From the IMG/VR virus record IMGVR_UViG_3300046665_000548, positions 1 through 64,000 of that record: DNA of 64,000 nucleotides; one strand, 5' to 3'. Shown piece after piece: positions 24-6,004 of the stretch. The first letter of the stretch is position 1; each line of letters begins with the position of its first letter. Made by a program: the position numbers and the translations under genes. The notes under the pieces were generated by a model that saw only the letters and a program-made list of their open reading frames with translations, ran no database searches and was not told the DNA's origin.

Positions 24-164
24 ATGTACTTGTAGCTGCACCTCGCCCCTTTCATTGGTCTCGCTTCTGCGGGCGACCAGCTATATACGTATAACGCTCG
101 TGATCGGTTAATTCCGACGCGGGCGTTTTTTGTTTTTCATCGTACTATTGGAGATTGTAAATGA
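24..164 (+). other. Candidate amber-containing leader ORF (M-Y-L-UAG; 46 codons if read through)
   Basis: ATG TAC TTG TAG CTG CAC at 24-41; frame stays open to TGA 162-164, overlapping ATG 161; TATATT at 12-17 lies 6 nt upstream. Confidence 0.45.
93..137 (+). terminator. Intrinsic terminator/attenuator hairpin
   Basis: AACGCTCG...CGGGCGTT stem followed by a T-rich tract. Confidence 0.65.
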
Positions 165-553
165 GTTGGCTTGCCACCCTACTGGGTAGCAAGGCGAAGA
201 GCCTTGTCGAGCGTCACGAAGACGCTGAAGAATTTGAACAAGAAGATTTGGACGTTTGGGATTCCACCGACGATTACGGCTATGCGGATGACGAGATTAT
301 CGGCACCGAGGAGTGGGAAGATCAGAAAGGAATGGAAGACCTCAAGCGTTCTCTCAAGCTCAATGCCAAGTGGTTTCTGGTGAAGGTCGTTAATTTCAAT
401 TCAGGCACATTGGCCGAACAGATTGAATGGCTCACGGAAAACTGTGGAGGTCAGTACAAGCGTGTTGGATGGTCATCGGGCTGTTCAACGAAGGTCGGAA
501 TCGCGTTCGAGCGGCCGAACGATGCGTTCTTCTACAAGCTTCGGTGGCGTTAA
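161..553 (+). CDS. Hypothetical protein, FKLRW-ended paralog family
   Basis: GGAG SD; ends FERPNDAFFYKLRWR. Confidence 0.8.
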   Translation: MSWLATLLGSKAKSLVERHEDAEEFEQEDLDVWDSTDDYGYADDEIIGTEEWEDQKGMEDLKRSLKLNAKWFLVKVVNFNSGTLAEQIEWLTENCGGQYKRVGWSSGCSTKVGIAFERPNDAFFYKLRWR

Positions 554-828
554 TGGCAACCCAGATTTTCAAACCACAAAGTATGCGCATTCGCCCGTTC
601 ATGAGAAGGCATCTGCCGTCCATGTGGGGCGTGTCCAGGATATGCAGATTTCATCACAAGGTAAACCTGCGTACCGAGCATATAACCCAGGCTATGAAAG
701 AATGGATTGAAGAGCAGCCGGGATTCTATTATCGCAGTGAAGGCAACAAGGTTTTCTACTTTTCAGAACCTTCAGTTGCCTTGTTGTTCAAGATGCGTTT
801 CTTTGGAGATACTGATGAAAATCCCTGA
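553..828 (+). CDS. Hypothetical protein, FKLRW-ended paralog family
   Basis: ATG overlaps previous TAA; FSEPSVALLFKMRFFG. Confidence 0.75.
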   Translation: MATQIFKPQSMRIRPFMRRHLPSMWGVSRICRFHHKVNLRTEHITQAMKEWIEEQPGFYYRSEGNKVFYFSEPSVALLFKMRFFGDTDENP

Positions 829-1135
829 CGAGTGGAACGAGCACCCAGCGTTCGGTGAAGCTCAGATGGTTCTCGGGCCACTGGATATTCCGGCCGCTGA
901 GGAGATCGAAGGCTTTGATTACGGTGAAGACGATTTTCTATTGTTCCGCTGGAATAATAACGCAGTAACGATGATGTTCGAAGGCAATATGGTTGTGTCG
1001 ATATCCTATAGACACAAAGCTGCGGATGGTTCAATCACACGTTATGGAGCAGATTTCTTCATCACTGATCCTGTCCCACAAGTATTTTTTGAGAATATCA
1101 AAAAATCTACACTAACAGGCTTGACGAACAAGTAG
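815..1135 (+). CDS. Hypothetical protein
   Basis: GGAG SD before ATG 815; ends in TAG. Confidence 0.7.
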   Translation: MKIPDEWNEHPAFGEAQMVLGPLDIPAAEEIEGFDYGEDDFLLFRWNNNAVTMMFEGNMVVSISYRHKAADGSITRYGADFFITDPVPQVFFENIKKSTLTGLTNK

Positions 1136-1149
1136 AACCTCGCTAGCTT
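1121..1149 (+). promoter_or_regulatory. Sigma70-type promoter of the Pth2 operon
   Basis: TTGACG-N17-TAGCTT. Confidence 0.65.
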
Positions 1150-1193
1150 AACAATACACGAAGACAGTAACCAACTAAACCAAGGATATTCCA

Positions 1194-1625
1194 ATGTCGC
1201 TGTAGCTGCACCATCACATTGATCTAACGGCTCTCACCACTGAGGCCGAGAACGACCCCTATCGCTTGTACGCCATTGTGCGCGGCGATCTGGAAATGTC
1301 GCCGGGCAAGCTCGCGGCTCAAGCCGGACATGCCTATTGCGACGCGCTCCATGCAGCGCTCACTCGCGATCCCTCTATCCAACAGAAGTATTTCAGGGCG
1401 AATAGCTCGGGGACCAAGGTCACCCTAGTCGCGTCCTCCGAGTTCCGACTCCTTCGCGCATATCAAGACGCGCAGAAGGCCGGATTGCCGTGCGCTCTGA
1501 TCATCGATCAGCATCACGTGCACCCTCCACACTTCGACGGCTCACCCATCATCACGGCGCTCGGGATCGGTCCTGCGCGGCGAGCGGATGTGCACGCCAT
1601 CACGAAGCGGTTCTCCACTCTTTAA
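1194..1625 (+). CDS. pth2: Peptidyl-tRNA hydrolase, Pth2 family, with in-frame UAG at codon 4
   Basis: YAIVRGDLEMSPGKLAAQAGHA, KVTL and TALGIGP motifs; SD AAGGA precedes ATG 1194, in frame with ORF 1266-1625 through TAG 1203-1205. Confidence 0.85.
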
Positions 1626-1651
1626 CCCCTGAAAAACCAAAGGATAAGATC

Positions 1652-1930
1652 ATGACCAACGAAAAGACCTACACGTTCAAGTTCACCACCCGTGAAACCT
1701 ACCTCTCCTATCGCGCCGATTGGAAGGCCGGTTACGCCGATCTCGCAAAAGAGATCAGCGACCTCAAGCGCATCCGCGCAAAGGGCACTCAGTCAGAGAT
1801 GTCCGCCGCTCAGAGCAAGCTCCACTATCTGTCGATCAACGCGACGGAGATGCTGGCCGCACTCAAGGAAGCCAAGCTGGAGGCAGGCCGTCAGTGGGCT
1901 GCTTCCCGTGAAGATCGTGTGGCCGCGTAA
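1652..1930 (+). CDS. Helical hypothetical protein (paralog of N-terminus of 2268-2840)
   Basis: AAGGA SD; FTTRETYLSYRADWKAGYADLAKEI. Confidence 0.8.
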   Translation: MTNEKTYTFKFTTRETYLSYRADWKAGYADLAKEISDLKRIRAKGTQSEMSAAQSKLHYLSINATEMLAALKEAKLEAGRQWAASREDRVAA

Positions 1931-1943
1931 GCGGTCACCCTTC

Positions 1944-2020
1944 GTAGGGGTAGCTGAATGGTTCAAGCACCGGTCCGGAAGGAACGGAGTATGTAGGTTC
2001 GAATCCTACCCCCTACGCCA
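1944..2020 (+). ncRNA. tRNA-like RNA lacking a canonical anticodon loop
   Basis: Acceptor GTAGGGG/CCCCTAC-G-CCA; T arm GTAGG-TTCGAAT-CCTAC; anticodon arm CCGGTCC-GGAA-GGAACGG with no U33. Confidence 0.8.
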
Positions 2021-2040
2021 CATTTTTTTTGGAGGAATAC

Positions 2041-2256
2041 ATGGCCGTCAAATATCTCGATAGCTTCACAGTTTACCCCACGGGTTCTGACGAGAAGATC
2101 AAGTTTGATTCGCTTCACGAAGCACAAGCATACGTCGAGCGGATCGTAGGAAATAGATCGTTCGCGAAACCTTTCCCGAACGAAAAAACCTATCTGTACG
2201 GACCCGGTAACGGCGACACTACACATATGATCCGCCAAGACTGCACATTCATTTAA
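2041..2256 (+). CDS. Hypothetical protein
   Basis: GGAGGA SD before ATG 2041. Confidence 0.75.
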   Translation: MAVKYLDSFTVYPTGSDEKIKFDSLHEAQAYVERIVGNRSFAKPFPNEKTYLYGPGNGDTTHMIRQDCTFI

Positions 2257-2267
2257 GGAGATCGATT

Positions 2268-2840
2268 ATGAGCGCGATGGGAATGCACCCGAAATTCACC
2301 GACAAAGAAGGCTATACCAACTGGATGGCCTCTTGGAAATCCATGTACAAGCAACTTTCTAGCGAGATCACCAAAGACAAGCTTTTCCTGAAGAAAGCTT
2401 TCCGAGAATCGTCTGTCGTTTCCGAAGAGACCAGGAAGCGTCAGAGCAATCTCGTACATAAGCGCGTAATGGCGCACAAGATGATGACCATGCACAAGGA
2501 TGCAAAGGAACGCTGGAAGCGTATCGTCGGCATGCAGAAAGAGATCGATGATCAGATGGCAAGCTTCCCGCTGACGCTGGAGGCCCCGAGCATCGATTTC
2601 CATTTCAACAAGGGCAGCATCGAATTCCCGTTTCTCCCTTCGTGGATCATTAAGTGTAAGGGCAAGACGTTCTACATGAACCATGTCGATTTTGATTGCG
2701 TTGGAACGACTCGCGAGACGCCTGAGCATCCGTCCACCAAAGGTTCGATGCGTTTCCGGCAGTGTTCGCTCGAACTGAGGGCAGATGGATCAGCATCGAT
2801 CAAAAAGAGGCAGCCAGTCGAATTGGCGAAAGTCGCTTGA
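2268..2840 (+). CDS. Two-domain hypothetical protein
   Basis: AAGGAG SD; N-terminus resembles 1652-1930; C-terminal FHFNK...W...RETPEHPSTKGS beta domain. Confidence 0.8.
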   Translation: MSAMGMHPKFTDKEGYTNWMASWKSMYKQLSSEITKDKLFLKKAFRESSVVSEETRKRQSNLVHKRVMAHKMMTMHKDAKERWKRIVGMQKEIDDQMASFPLTLEAPSIDFHFNKGSIEFPFLPSWIIKCKGKTFYMNHVDFDCVGTTRETPEHPSTKGSMRFRQCSLELRADGSASIKKRQPVELAKVA

Positions 2841-2864
2841 CAAAAATCGAATCTGTGTTAGTTT
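2837..2864 (+). promoter_or_regulatory. Sigma70-type promoter
   Basis: TTGACA-N16-TAGTTT. Confidence 0.6.
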
Positions 2865-2882
2865 TGAGGCTCCACGGAGGTC

Positions 2883-3878
2883 TTGAACATGTCGATCCAC
2901 CCCGGCGTAGAACTCGGTACCTATACTGAAGAACTGCGCCGGGTCCCCGTTCACCTGGATCACAAGCCTCATTTGACTTTCGATCTCGCCAAGGCTCTTG
3001 GGCCACAGGCAGTTGCCGAAGCCTCCGAATATTCAGGCGAGACGCTGATCGACCGGGTTCGTAACCTGGGGATGGAAGATTTCGCGAACCTGACGGTCGA
3101 TCAACTCGCCAAGGTTCGTCGCGCCTCGTTCATCATGATGGGTTCCTCTGTAGAGGATGCATTTCGGAACGAGCCGCGTCTTCGCATCATCCAAAAGATT
3201 GAAAACAGCATGTGGCGATGGGGCGTCTCCCGCTCCGGCTGGAATGAGGTCGTTGATGCCTATGATGGCATTCGTCGCTTCACTTTTCATCCCGACTTTG
3301 AGGTCCGGCTCGATCACACCACTGGTCACAACGAGCGCGGCCATAGCCAGTATAGCCGTACGTTTCTCGACGGCGTGTTCGGCTTCCTGATCTATTATCG
3401 AGGCGAGCATGTGATGACGCTCGGCTTTTCGGTCATGAGCAAGCGCCGTCTGCTGATCCAGCAGGTGCAATTGAAGAAGCGTCGCGGAAATCGATGGTTG
3501 TTTAAGCTGTCGAGCAATTACGTGGAGTTCGCTCTTTCTCGCTTCCAGGAAAGCTTTCCGCGTCATCGCCTCTACCTGATCGACGGCGAAGACAACATTC
3601 GTACGAGTCTCAACTCGTATAGTTCTGGTTTGAAGGATGCGGAAAGCCAATTGGAACGCGCGACCGCATCCCTCAAGAAGGCTGCGGGCCAGGACCGAAC
3701 GTACGATTTACGTTCGATTAATCGCGCACTCGATGACAAGCTTTTCTTCAAGGAAAAGATTGAACACGTTCGTGAACAAGTTGGCCGCGTGACTGCGATC
3801 TACGCCAACACTGGCCGATATACTCGCGGCAAGACGTTGGTCGTCAATCGCCTAAAGCATTACGCGCTGGCGGCTTGA
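2883..3878 (+). CDS. Hypothetical protein
   Basis: 331-aa ORF with GGAGG SD (start may be ATG 2889). Confidence 0.8.
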   Translation: MNMSIHPGVELGTYTEELRRVPVHLDHKPHLTFDLAKALGPQAVAEASEYSGETLIDRVRNLGMEDFANLTVDQLAKVRRASFIMMGSSVEDAFRNEPRLRIIQKIENSMWRWGVSRSGWNEVVDAYDGIRRFTFHPDFEVRLDHTTGHNERGHSQYSRTFLDGVFGFLIYYRGEHVMTLGFSVMSKRRLLIQQVQLKKRRGNRWLFKLSSNYVEFALSRFQESFPRHRLYLIDGEDNIRTSLNSYSSGLKDAESQLERATASLKKAAGQDRTYDLRSINRALDDKLFFKEKIEHVREQVGRVTAIYANTGRYTRGKTLVVNRLKHYALAA

Positions 3879-3909
3879 CAGACGGCGCATTCAAGTAGAT
3901 TGATCTTGA

Positions 3910-4080
3910 ATGAAGATTTACATTCTCACCGCGCATAAGGCTGATCCGAATGGCGGCGAGGGCACTACAGAGGTTATGAATTTCGGCTGGACCGATAAGG
4001 CAATAGCGGAAGCCTATAAGGACCAGCATGAAGTCTATTATGACACTCAATTTGAGGTACACGAAATCGATGTGATATAG
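3910..4080 (+). CDS. Small hypothetical protein (56 aa, absent from ORF track)
   Basis: MKIYILTAHKADPNGGEG...FEVHEIDVI, TAG stop; TTGACA at 3875. Confidence 0.65.
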   Translation: MKIYILTAHKADPNGGEGTTEVMNFGWTDKAIAEAYKDQHEVYYDTQFEVHEIDVI

Positions 4081-4090
4081 AACGTCTCTT

Positions 4091-4178
4091 GGGGATGTAG
4101 CTCAGCGGTAGAGCGCCGGTCTCTAAAACCGGGGCGGCCAAAAGCCCGGCGCGGGTTCGAAGCCCGCCATTCCCACCA
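4091..4178 (+). tRNA. Amber suppressor tRNA (anticodon CUA), long variable arm, G4:U69, A73
   Basis: GGGGATG/CATTCCC-A-CCA; anticodon arm CCGGT-CTCTAAA-ACCGG; T arm GCGGG-TTCGAAG-CCCGC. Confidence 0.9.
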
Positions 4179-4179
4179 A

Positions 4180-4256
4180 GCTCCCTTAGCTCAGTTGGTT
4201 AGAGCACTGGACTCTAAATCCGGGGGTCGTCGGTTCGAGCCCGACAGGGAGCGCCA
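4180..4256 (+). tRNA. Amber suppressor tRNA (anticodon CUA), short variable arm, G73
   Basis: GCTCCCT/AGGGAGC-G-CCA; anticodon arm CTGGA-CTCTAAA-TCCGG; T arm GTCGG-TTCGAGC-CCGAC. Confidence 0.9.
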
Positions 4257-4260
4257 GTTA

Positions 4261-4292
4261 GAAAGCCGGGGGAAACCCCGGCTTTCTTTTTC
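4261..4292 (+). terminator. Intrinsic terminator after tRNA pair
   Basis: GAAAGCCGGGG-GAAA-CCCCGGCTTTC plus T tract. Confidence 0.85.
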
Positions 4293-4296
4293 TTCT

Positions 4297-4776
4297 TTAC
4301 ATTACTTCCGCGACGACGCGGCCGACACCACGACCGGTCAGACCGATAGCGCTGGCTGCGCCCTTGGACAGGTCGAGCACGCGACCTTTGATGAATGGGC
4401 CGCGATCATTGACCGTGACGACGACGCTGCGGTCACCGTGGGTGACACGTAGCTTGGTGCCGAACGGCAGCGAACGGTGCGCAGCGGTCATGGCGTTCTG
4501 ATTGAAGCGAGCGCCCGAAGCGGTCTTGTTACCGGCTTCATTGCCGTAATAGGACGCGACGCCAGAAAAGGTGCGTCCGCTTCCAGTCGTCACGGGCGCG
4601 GCGGTTGCGCGAAACGCGTGGTCGAAAAACGACAGGATGGATGGAGTGGTATCTGGCGTCGGCTTGGCGACGCGCTGAGCATGATGCCGATGATGGTGAG
4701 ATTTGGCCGAGGCTGTATCAGCAATCGTGCCGGTCATTAGAAGAGCGAGAGTAGCAACAGTGATAATGGGTTTCAC
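4297..4776 (-). CDS. rlpA: RlpA-family (DPBB) lytic transglycosylase with signal peptide
   Basis: GVASYYG, TASG, TAAHRSLPFGT, VNDRGPF, LDLSKGAA; GTG 4776 after AAGGA. Confidence 0.9.
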   Translation of the reverse strand: MKPIITVATLALLMTGTIADTASAKSHHHRHHAQRVAKPTPDTTPSILSFFDHAFRATAAPVTTGSGRTFSGVASYYGNEAGNKTASGARFNQNAMTAAHRSLPFGTKLRVTHGDRSVVVTVNDRGPFIKGRVLDLSKGAASAIGLTGRGVGRVVAEVM

Positions 4777-5158: not shown

Positions 5159-6004
5159 ATGATGACATTCGTACGCCTAATGGAGCTTGCTGGCCAGCCC
5201 ATTCTCCTTGAACGCCTCACGCCTTCTCAGGCGAAGGCTATTTTTGTTCAGCATGGTGCGCCGGAAACGGCTTTCTCGTCACCAGAAGCGCTCAAAGCGG
5301 CGTGGAAAAAACTCATTATCCAGCATCACCCAGATCGCGGCGGCAGTCCTGGCGTAGCGCAGGAGGTCAACGCGGCCTTCGACGTGCTCAAATCAACGCC
5401 TGTGTCTTCGTCTGGATCAAGTCAAGATTGGCCTGACTACAGCAAGGGCTCGTACGGCCGATCTAGCCAGGAAGATAGTGATCCATATCCGGTATGGGCT
5501 CAAGCGGGATGGTCTGGTGGTGCGCGCGAATCCGGCCGTATCAGCCGTAACGATTATCGCGACATGAATTTCTTCAAGAAGAAGATGTGGGAATTGAGCG
5601 GCCAATCGAAAGAAGAATGGACAATCACTGCATTCGACGGCAGCTTTTTCCGCAATTCTCTGACTGTTTATGGTTCGCCCAAAATTTTCAAAGACATGGC
5701 CGAAGCAATGGTCATGTGGAATTCTAAGGGTGGAAATTCTTATCCGACCCGCGCCGTGTTCGCGTCTCGTCGTCGTTCAAAGAAGATGTACGTGATCTAC
5801 TGTGATGGAAAGTTCATGAGCTTTGATCCGCCCGCCCTCGCTCACGACTCGATGAATGACAATCCAAGTAACGATCAGAGCTTCATGCGACAAATGCCTG
5901 AGATGCTGGATCGGATCATGGCGCAGCGTCAACAGTCGAGAAATTCACGAGCCGAAGCCGAAGATCGCGAATGGCAAGGTCGTACTCGGAACGGAGACAA
6001 TTAA
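5159..6004 (+). CDS. J-domain-containing late protein
   Basis: LKAAWKKLIIQHHPDRGG...QEVNAAFDVL. Confidence 0.8.
   Translation: MMTFVRLMELAGQPILLERLTPSQAKAIFVQHGAPETAFSSPEALKAAWKKLIIQHHPDRGGSPGVAQEVNAAFDVLKSTPVSSSGSSQDWPDYSKGSYGRSSQEDSDPYPVWAQAGWSGGARESGRISRNDYRDMNFFKKKMWELSGQSKEEWTITAFDGSFFRNSLTVYGSPKIFKDMAEAMVMWNSKGGNSYPTRAVFASRRRSKKMYVIYCDGKFMSFDPPALAHDSMNDNPSNDQSFMRQMPEMLDRIMAQRQQSRNSRAEAEDREWQGRTRNGDN

Follow-up and report, generated by a model that had tools for sequence, protein, structure and literature searches.

A tRNA-shaped RNA with a GNRA-capped arm in place of the anticodon arm in a huge-phage gene row

The gene row and the RNA within it

The window, the whole 64,000-nt stretch of DNA analysed here, makes up the first part of a phage record of 607,744 bp (G000, IMGVR_UViG_3300046665_000548) that CheckV rates as complete. 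All genes from 161 to 4256 are on the + strand. Their order is PTH2, orf92, the tRNA-shaped RNA, orf71, orf190, orf331, a small ORF, two tRNAs with CUA anticodons and a terminator. The features used below are as follows, in window coordinates unless G000 is named.

1266-1625, + strand: peptidyl-tRNA hydrolase PTH2 (Pfam PF01981, E 1.3e-21)
1652-1930, + strand: orf92, 92 aa, with its stop 13 nt before the RNA
1919-1938, + strand: 8-bp hairpin with a GUAA tetraloop, invariant in three loci and predicted in the fold of 1905-2045
1944-2020, + strand: tRNA-shaped RNA, 77 nt (Rfam tRNA, ARAGORN, cloverleaf MFE)
1944-1950/2010-2016, + strand: its acceptor stem, 7 Watson-Crick bp
1953-1968, + strand: its D arm
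1970-1987, + strand: 18-nt arm in place of the anticodon arm, CCGGTCC-GGAA-GGAACGG
1993-2009, + strand: its T arm, 5-bp stem and loop TTCGAAT
2017 and 2018-2020, + strand: discriminator G and encoded CCA, read from the sequence of the RNA
2041-2256, + strand: orf71, 71 aa (ORF list), RBS GGAGG
2268-2840, + strand: orf190, 190 aa, 83-86% conserved in the RNA-carrying clade
2883-3878, + strand: orf331, 331 aa, a family with 87 homologues
4091-4178, + strand: CUA-anticodon (amber-suppressor-type) tRNA with a long variable arm (ARAGORN, Rfam)
4180-4256, + strand: second CUA-anticodon tRNA (ARAGORN, Rfam)
4260-4297, + strand: intrinsic-terminator-like hairpin, 12 pairs and a T run (consensus scan)
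G000 607052-607549, + strand: RNA 2'-phosphotransferase Tpt1/KptA, right at the end of the record
G000 212067-212954, - strand: GluRS catalytic core, 295 aa (gltX_bact, 254 bits)

Apart from one arm, the RNA has the body of a canonical elongator tRNA (RF00005). It shares with it the acceptor stem, the discriminator and CCA, U8, the D-loop GG (G18G19), the 15-48 pair (here A15/U48), the T arm and a 5-nt variable loop. The first-pass annotation had described the acceptor stem, T arm and encoded CCA as perfect, and our reading of the sequence agrees. Conversely, where canonical tRNA presents a 7-nt loop with U33 and a free triplet, the phage RNA has an 18-nt arm closed by a GGAA tetraloop of the GNRA type (1977-1980). 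Position 33 is C instead of U, and the 7-nt anticodon loop is absent. The two strands of the arm form seven stacked pairs, namely C-G, C-G, G-C, G·A, U-A, C-G and C-G. The stem CCGGT/AACGG resembles that of the neighboring long-arm CUA tRNA (CCGGT/ACCGG).

In an Infernal-type search the Rfam tRNA model RF00005 scored 50.7 bits against 1944-2017 (E 6e-8 over the window, gathering score 29), with an alignment (cmscan) that skips 12 nt of the anticodon loop; nothing else of note was found among Rfam families at this site at E<=10. ARAGORN reports 1944-2020 as 'tRNA-???', modelling an 8-nt loop with the 4-base anticodon ggaa. Folded in full, the RNA has a cloverleaf as its MFE structure, in which the tetraloop closes the arm (-28.5 kcal/mol, z -2.1). 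The nearest-neighbor energy of the arm is -6.9 kcal/mol in the closed form and +0.8 kcal/mol with an open 8-nt loop, so that the closed form is better by about 7.7 kcal/mol, and both loop-closing C-G pairs have a predicted pair probability above 0.998. The earlier description of an 18-nt arm that lacks U33 and extends into a GNRA-capped stem is therefore borne out by the sequence and by the closed MFE fold. A cloverleaf with a sealed arm is present at 1944-2020 well beyond chance.

The RNA is closely packed between its neighbors. The GUAA hairpin ends 5 nt before it, and the stop codon of orf92 (1928-1930) lies inside the loop of this hairpin. All 20 nt of the hairpin are invariant in the three loci compared below, including the non-coding 3' strand, while the next 4-5 nt vary. 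The hairpin probably protects the 3' end of the upstream mRNA or takes part in its processing. On the other side, the RBS and start codon of orf71 follow about 20 nt past the CCA end. The hairpin at 4260-4297 likely marks the end of the operon that holds the RNA.

Several of the neighboring proteins have no assigned family. Family searches gave no match for orf71. The N-terminal domains of orf92 and orf190 are paralogous (BLASTP E 3e-7) and belong to no known family. Most homologues of orf331 come from very large phage contigs, of which the longest reaches 1.27 Mb, and tRNAs or translation genes are often close by. The structural model of orf331 (pLDDT 94) has a helical N-domain and a GNAT-like core, into which a long antiparallel helical hairpin is inserted; the structural matches to GNAT are weak, those to the helical hairpin are generic, and no named family matches. 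The two CUA tRNAs score 64.2 and 68.7 bits against the Rfam model; L001-L003 carry them too, as do more distant relatives. The first of them (4091-4178) combines a type-I-like D arm with the long variable arm.

The wider setting is rich in tRNA metabolism. The record holds 57 tRNA genes, among them two tRNA-Phe(GAA) and two tRNA-Ser(GGA), and a permuted tmRNA at 576377-576796. PTH2 lies in the operon, two genes upstream of the RNA, and Tpt1 lies just upstream across the record ends. Since Tpt1 precedes the same gene row in the related loci L001 and L002, the record is circularly permuted at its ends. The 295-aa GluRS core has no anticodon-binding domain and is nearer to GluRS than to GluQRS. 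TAG terminates 12% of the long ORFs of G000. Recoding of TAG was considered and rejected, as reading it as sense adds no more coverage than reading other stops does, and the phage seems to use the standard code despite the two CUA tRNAs.

Conservation of the fold and the arm

Among loci with readable DNA, a synteny search anchored on the proteins of orf331, orf92 and orf190 led to L001 and to L002/L499/L500 only. Orthologous RNAs occupy the same position in two of these related phage contigs, which hold the closest homologues of orf331 (L002:5100-5176 and L001:4226-4301). In both, an orf92 orthologue directly precedes the RNA, and PTH2 is also upstream of the orthologous RNA in L001 and L500.

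The three RNAs are 88-96% identical between loci. By comparison, the orthologous ORFs on either side agree at just 52-56% of their four-fold degenerate sites, and neutral divergence is therefore near saturation. The 18-nt arm is 100% identical across all three loci. Outside the arm there are 12 substitutions among the three sequences, and each preserves the structure. Three are compensatory double changes: pair 3-70 from A-U to G-C (G3-C70 in L002), pair 12-23 from U-A to G-C, and the tertiary pair 15-48 from A·U to G·C (G·C in L001). The pair 13·22 changes from G·A to A·G, and one G-C becomes G-U. The remaining differences are one D-loop deletion and two at variable positions. Taken over 22 pairs in three sequences, 66 of 66 cells are paired, compared with 38-50% in controls with slid partners.

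The probability that an unconstrained arm would remain unchanged in both lineages is about 2e-10, and for its six unpaired or non-Watson-Crick positions alone it is about 6e-4. The check for covariation among relatives thus gave compensatory changes at 3-70, 12-23 and 15-48 and none in the arm. The arm pairs never vary among the three sequences, so covariation cannot prove the closed form of the arm, nor does the conservation of the arm significantly exceed that of the other stems. At the level of sequence comparison, these results establish purifying selection on both the fold and the exact arm sequence of the tRNA-shaped RNA.

The first-pass annotation had argued from the intact stems against simple decay. 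The invariant arm, the compensatory changes and the near-saturated neutral divergence support that argument. Odd tRNAs in phage arrays are usually labelled pseudo or 'OTHER' by annotators, and the RNA could on this precedent be taken for a decaying pseudogene or a chance cloverleaf. However, identity of 88-96% against near-saturated neutral sites, changes of the structure-preserving kind alone, no broken pair among the 66 cells and the Rfam score make this reading extremely improbable and point to a functional RNA.

DNA patterns for the RNA or its arm, both exact and gapped, had no match in IMG/VR, and the same patterns gave one match in JGI metagenomes, which is attributed to chance. In GTDB genomes there were at least 120 pattern matches, one of them tRNA-like (Nocardia sp., described below). 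Two DNA sequencing runs contain the region at about 90% likeness, and another contig has a 108-nt gap at the corresponding place. No RNA run in which the stretch occurs was listed, and the one RNA run examined gave zero reads. Distant phages, in which the 190-aa protein is 50-59% identical, keep PTH2 and the CUA tRNAs at the locus and have no RNA of this design there; in one such clade (L502-L504) a GIY-YIG endonuclease gene (3715-4671, - strand) occupies the site. The CUA tRNA of that clade, at 5610-5687 (+ strand), has C33 instead of U33.

A normal 7-nt loop was looked for in the relatives. The close ones have the same arm, the distant ones have no gene at the locus, and no orthologue with a 7-nt loop was found among the related loci. 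There is no close paralogue among the 57 tRNAs of the phage, and a nearest-neighbor comparison with 964 phage tRNAs gave no clear isotype relative.

Decoding and other sealed tRNA look-alikes

The tRNA-shaped RNA is very probably a non-decoding structured RNA, because it has neither an open loop nor U33 with which to pair with a codon. The proposal of a non-decoding tRNA mimic, made from the first reading of this DNA, is supported by the strong preference for the closed tetraloop form and by the retention of the arm in the orthologues. The competing view is that the RNA is a decoding tRNA with an 8-nt loop, which would either read UUCC as a +1 suppressor or read the triplet UUC or UCC. ARAGORN models exactly such a loop with the anticodon GGAA, functional 8-nt-loop tRNAs exist (SufB2, yeast mitochondrial tRNA-Thr), and the CUA tRNA of a related phage has C33 as well. 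The 8-nt-loop suppressors (SufB2/sufA6, SufJ) and yeast mitochondrial tRNA-Thr(UAG) likewise have one extra nucleotide in the arm (18 instead of 17). However, those tRNAs have U33, an open loop and a recognizable parent isoacceptor, whereas the ends of the loop in the phage RNA form two C-G pairs under the GNRA cap, at the energetic advantage given above, and no parent is apparent.

The codon usage of the phage also bears on this point. In 564 long ORFs, 707 of 4,312 UUC codons (16.4%) are followed in frame by C. This falls within the range of 14-21% for the other NNC codons followed by C, and UUC-C is therefore not avoided. Among candidate +1 junctions that join long frames, UUCC occurs 11 times, against a mean of 16.7 per quadruplet. 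Thus, unlike what would be expected next to such suppressor tRNAs, the phage genome has no trace of UUCC use or avoidance. In addition, the phage already owns two tRNA-Phe(GAA) and two tRNA-Ser(GGA), and the 14-16-nt arms of other capped look-alikes cannot open into a usable loop. The closed arm, C33, the missing UUCC signature and the existing Phe and Ser tRNAs together make quadruplet decoding, or decoding of an additional triplet, very improbable. The earlier judgment that a frameshift suppressor is the less likely reading holds.

We searched IMG/VR for other RNAs of this design with a pattern that placed CC-GGAA-GG at the correct spacing from a T arm, which gave at least 117 matches. These patterns required the cap, so that the counts given here are counts among the matches listed and not class frequencies. 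Among the matches listed, GGAA-capped arms of 5-6 bp were found in L188, L191, L192, L230 and L247. The element at L188:2908-2977 sits in an array of 33 tRNAs and that at L192:4646-4716 in an array of 15, while L247:11466-11535 has a body and D arm like those of tRNA-Glu. A GAGA version of the pattern gave, among the matches listed, L374, L372, L325, L341 and L375. Of these, L374:4886-4962 has 7 bp under the GAGA cap and also an 18-nt arm, L372:4543-4627 has an 11-bp stem with a GAGA cap, and L325:2480-2556 is another member. A control pattern with the non-GNRA sequence AGAG gave, among the matches listed, L391, whose arm has a GGAA cap, and two tRNAs in which the loop reads CAGAGGG. The latter two (L460, L466) are short and unrelated, with A33 and with C32 and G38 able to pair.

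Most of the capped look-alikes score above the Rfam threshold for tRNA, at 41-51 bits, and a cloverleaf is the predicted fold for most; in this check the model did not match L375 and L341 at the site of the cap, and L391 was outside the scan. The arms vary in length from 14 to 26 nt, with stems of 5-11 bp and GGAA or GAGA caps. This variation argues for abolition of the loop rather than for docking of the arm tip at a fixed distance.

In Nocardia sp., L051:5407-5481 (- strand) is a weak tRNA-like element (30 bits) without CCA but with an 18-nt GGAA-capped arm; it was not found in 150 other genomes of the family. Entries labelled 'tRNA-OTHER' or pseudo-tRNA occur in the tRNA arrays of cultured Klebsiella phages. 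One of these phages (OR472445, L497) has two such entries in its array, at 1018-1092 and 1454-1532: a 'pseudo tRNA-Ser' whose loop is 6 nt long and a 'tRNA-OTHER' that resembles the window RNA in its 3' half. Sister phages are unannotated in this region. A search of the literature found no description of capped tRNA look-alikes, although an existing description is still possible. It is conceivable, though unlikely, that sealed-anticodon look-alikes make up a recurrent, undescribed class of phage small RNAs, which would serve as uncleavable, non-miscoding surrogates that blunt host tRNA-targeting immune enzymes. The huge-phage RNA would then be a conserved member with a sequence-specific arm tip.

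Possible roles of the RNA

Our best overall explanation, which we regard as evenly balanced, is that the locus encodes a non-decoding tRNA-shaped RNA released from an operon with PTH2 and two amber-suppressor tRNAs. As part of a row of same-strand genes, it is probably cut from a polycistronic transcript, likely by the tRNA-processing enzymes of the host. RNase P would likely cut at G1944, which would put the conserved GUAA hairpin at the new 3' end of the upstream mRNA, and 3' trimming would proceed to the CCA. The released RNA would likely not decode. Being almost certainly unable to read codons, it must act through its tRNA body if it acts after release. We tentatively propose that it does so in trans as a harmless tRNA surrogate, which enzymes that recognize the tRNA shape or the CCA end may bind without cleavage of an anticodon loop and without miscoding. 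A trans-acting role of this kind falls just short of being probable, and we rank it first because of the invariant arm tip, the recurrence of such RNAs in tRNA arrays, the neighboring genes for tRNA repair and recycling, and the literature on defense tRNases.

The most likely specific role would be that of a decoy or competitive inhibitor of host tRNA-targeting defense enzymes, although by itself this assignment is tentative and rather unlikely. Classical anticodon nucleases recognize the anticodon loop, and an RNA that has none would be a poor decoy for them. Substrate mimics also titrate catalytic enzymes poorly unless binding is tight. Defense tRNases that cut the anticodon arm are documented (PMC13056530), and phage tRNAs with altered anticodon loops are reported to escape host anticodon nucleases (PMC10264068). 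The present case resembles both in that the phages are rich in tRNAs and the change lies where the nucleases attack. However, the escaping tRNAs still decode, whereas in the phage RNA the loop is abolished. Any benefit must therefore come from binding and not from replacing a cleaved tRNA.

The RNA may instead act purely in cis: cleavage by RNase P and 3' processing at this site would separate the mRNA of orf92 from that of orf71-orf190, and the released RNA would be inert. Non-decoding tRNA look-alikes released by tRNA-processing enzymes are known in mascRNA (MALAT1) and the vtRNAs of gammaherpesvirus 68. Like them, the phage RNA has a tRNA-like fold that adjoins another transcript, with a stable structure on the upstream RNA, and is very probably non-decoding. 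It lies directly 3' of a transcript whose new end would carry a conserved hairpin of the protective type, as in mascRNA. The eukaryotic and eukaryotic-viral RNAs are reduced cloverleaves, whereas the phage RNA has a complete bacterial-type body and an encoded CCA. The position within the operon and the invariant upstream hairpin are consistent with such punctuation, as is the fact that selection has kept the acceptor stem, the D stem and the 15-48 pair, which RNase P needs for recognition of the elbow. Conversely, RNase P needs no anticodon arm, yet all 18 nt of the arm are unchanged, including the free N and R positions of the loop and the G·A pair. The encoded CCA and the perfect discriminator context would also be unneeded, and in other phages the capped look-alikes lie among closely packed real tRNAs, which supply cut sites of their own. 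We therefore consider a purely cis role unlikely. Less likely still is that an anticodon-blind synthetase charges the RNA and a transferase uses it as an aminoacyl donor for non-ribosomal transfer. The intact acceptor stem, G73 and encoded CCA would permit charging, PTH2 is in the same operon, the phage encodes a GluRS core without an anticodon-binding domain, and the GNAT-like core with helical hairpin of orf331 is an arrangement found also in Fem transferases, which is a weak indication. However, the RNA has none of the known anticodon-independent identity sets (no G3·U70, long variable arm or G-1) and no clear isotype relative among the phage tRNAs compared above. Moreover, the structural matches of orf331 are generic and its family is present in many phages without this RNA nearby. 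The acceptor stem also differs from those of the phage tRNA-Glu set, and a tRNA-Glu link through the truncated GluRS was rejected on this mismatch. Donation is thus improbable.

Ribosome rescue, another of the roles suggested in the first-pass annotation, is unlikely, as the phage has its own tmRNA and the RNA does not have the G3·U70 alanine identity. The tRNA-like domain of tmRNA likewise mimics a tRNA, has no anticodon and still relies on its acceptor and T arm. However, tmRNA has G3·U70 and a tag reading frame and has no anticodon arm, whereas the phage RNA is 77 nt long with A3-U70, or G3-C70 in L002. A further possibility is that the arm mimics the apex of SRP RNA helix 8 on a tRNA scaffold and engages host Ffh or FtsY. 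The 13 nt at 1972-1984 are identical to G48-A60 of E. coli 4.5S RNA, which covers the tetraloop, two C-G pairs, U-A and G·A; this 13-mer occurs once in the 608-kb genome against about 0.02 expected, and its tetraloop and G·A pair are invariant. Relative to 4.5S helix 8, the tetraloop, G48, G49, A59 and A60 are thus matched, but most of the protein-binding internal loops are missing: A47, G61 and C62 of the symmetric loop and the whole asymmetric loop are absent. In addition, the Rfam consensus has G-C where the phage RNA has U-A, the RF00169 model gives no match, the capped arms elsewhere use GAGA and other stems, and the resemblance was spotted after the fact. The 13-nt identity may be coincidental, and SRP mimicry is extremely improbable. 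An SRP system of the phage itself was also considered and rejected, with no SRP model match and no phage SRP protein (Ffh or FtsY) found in G000.

Why phages carry tRNA genes is debated, and recent work ties them to host defenses that cut or modify tRNAs. A conserved tRNA-shaped RNA that is almost certainly non-decoding, and that keeps all tRNA features except decoding, separates the functions of the tRNA body from translation. If it is expressed, it would offer a direct handle on which host or phage proteins recognize the tRNA shape during infection. If it is only a processing signal, it would be a clean case in a bacterial virus of tRNA-like punctuation combined with a protective hairpin. 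Genes of this kind are now labelled 'pseudo', 'OTHER' or 'undetermined' in annotation and passed over, and simple patterns already turn up several more capped look-alikes.

Other unusual tRNA genes occur in the same record. One Rfam tRNA match is 143 nt long (G000 252292-252434, - strand), a tRNA-Lys is 87 nt long (137536-137622, + strand) and a tRNA-Asn 86 nt (343310-343395, + strand). These overlong matches may hold introns or extra arms.
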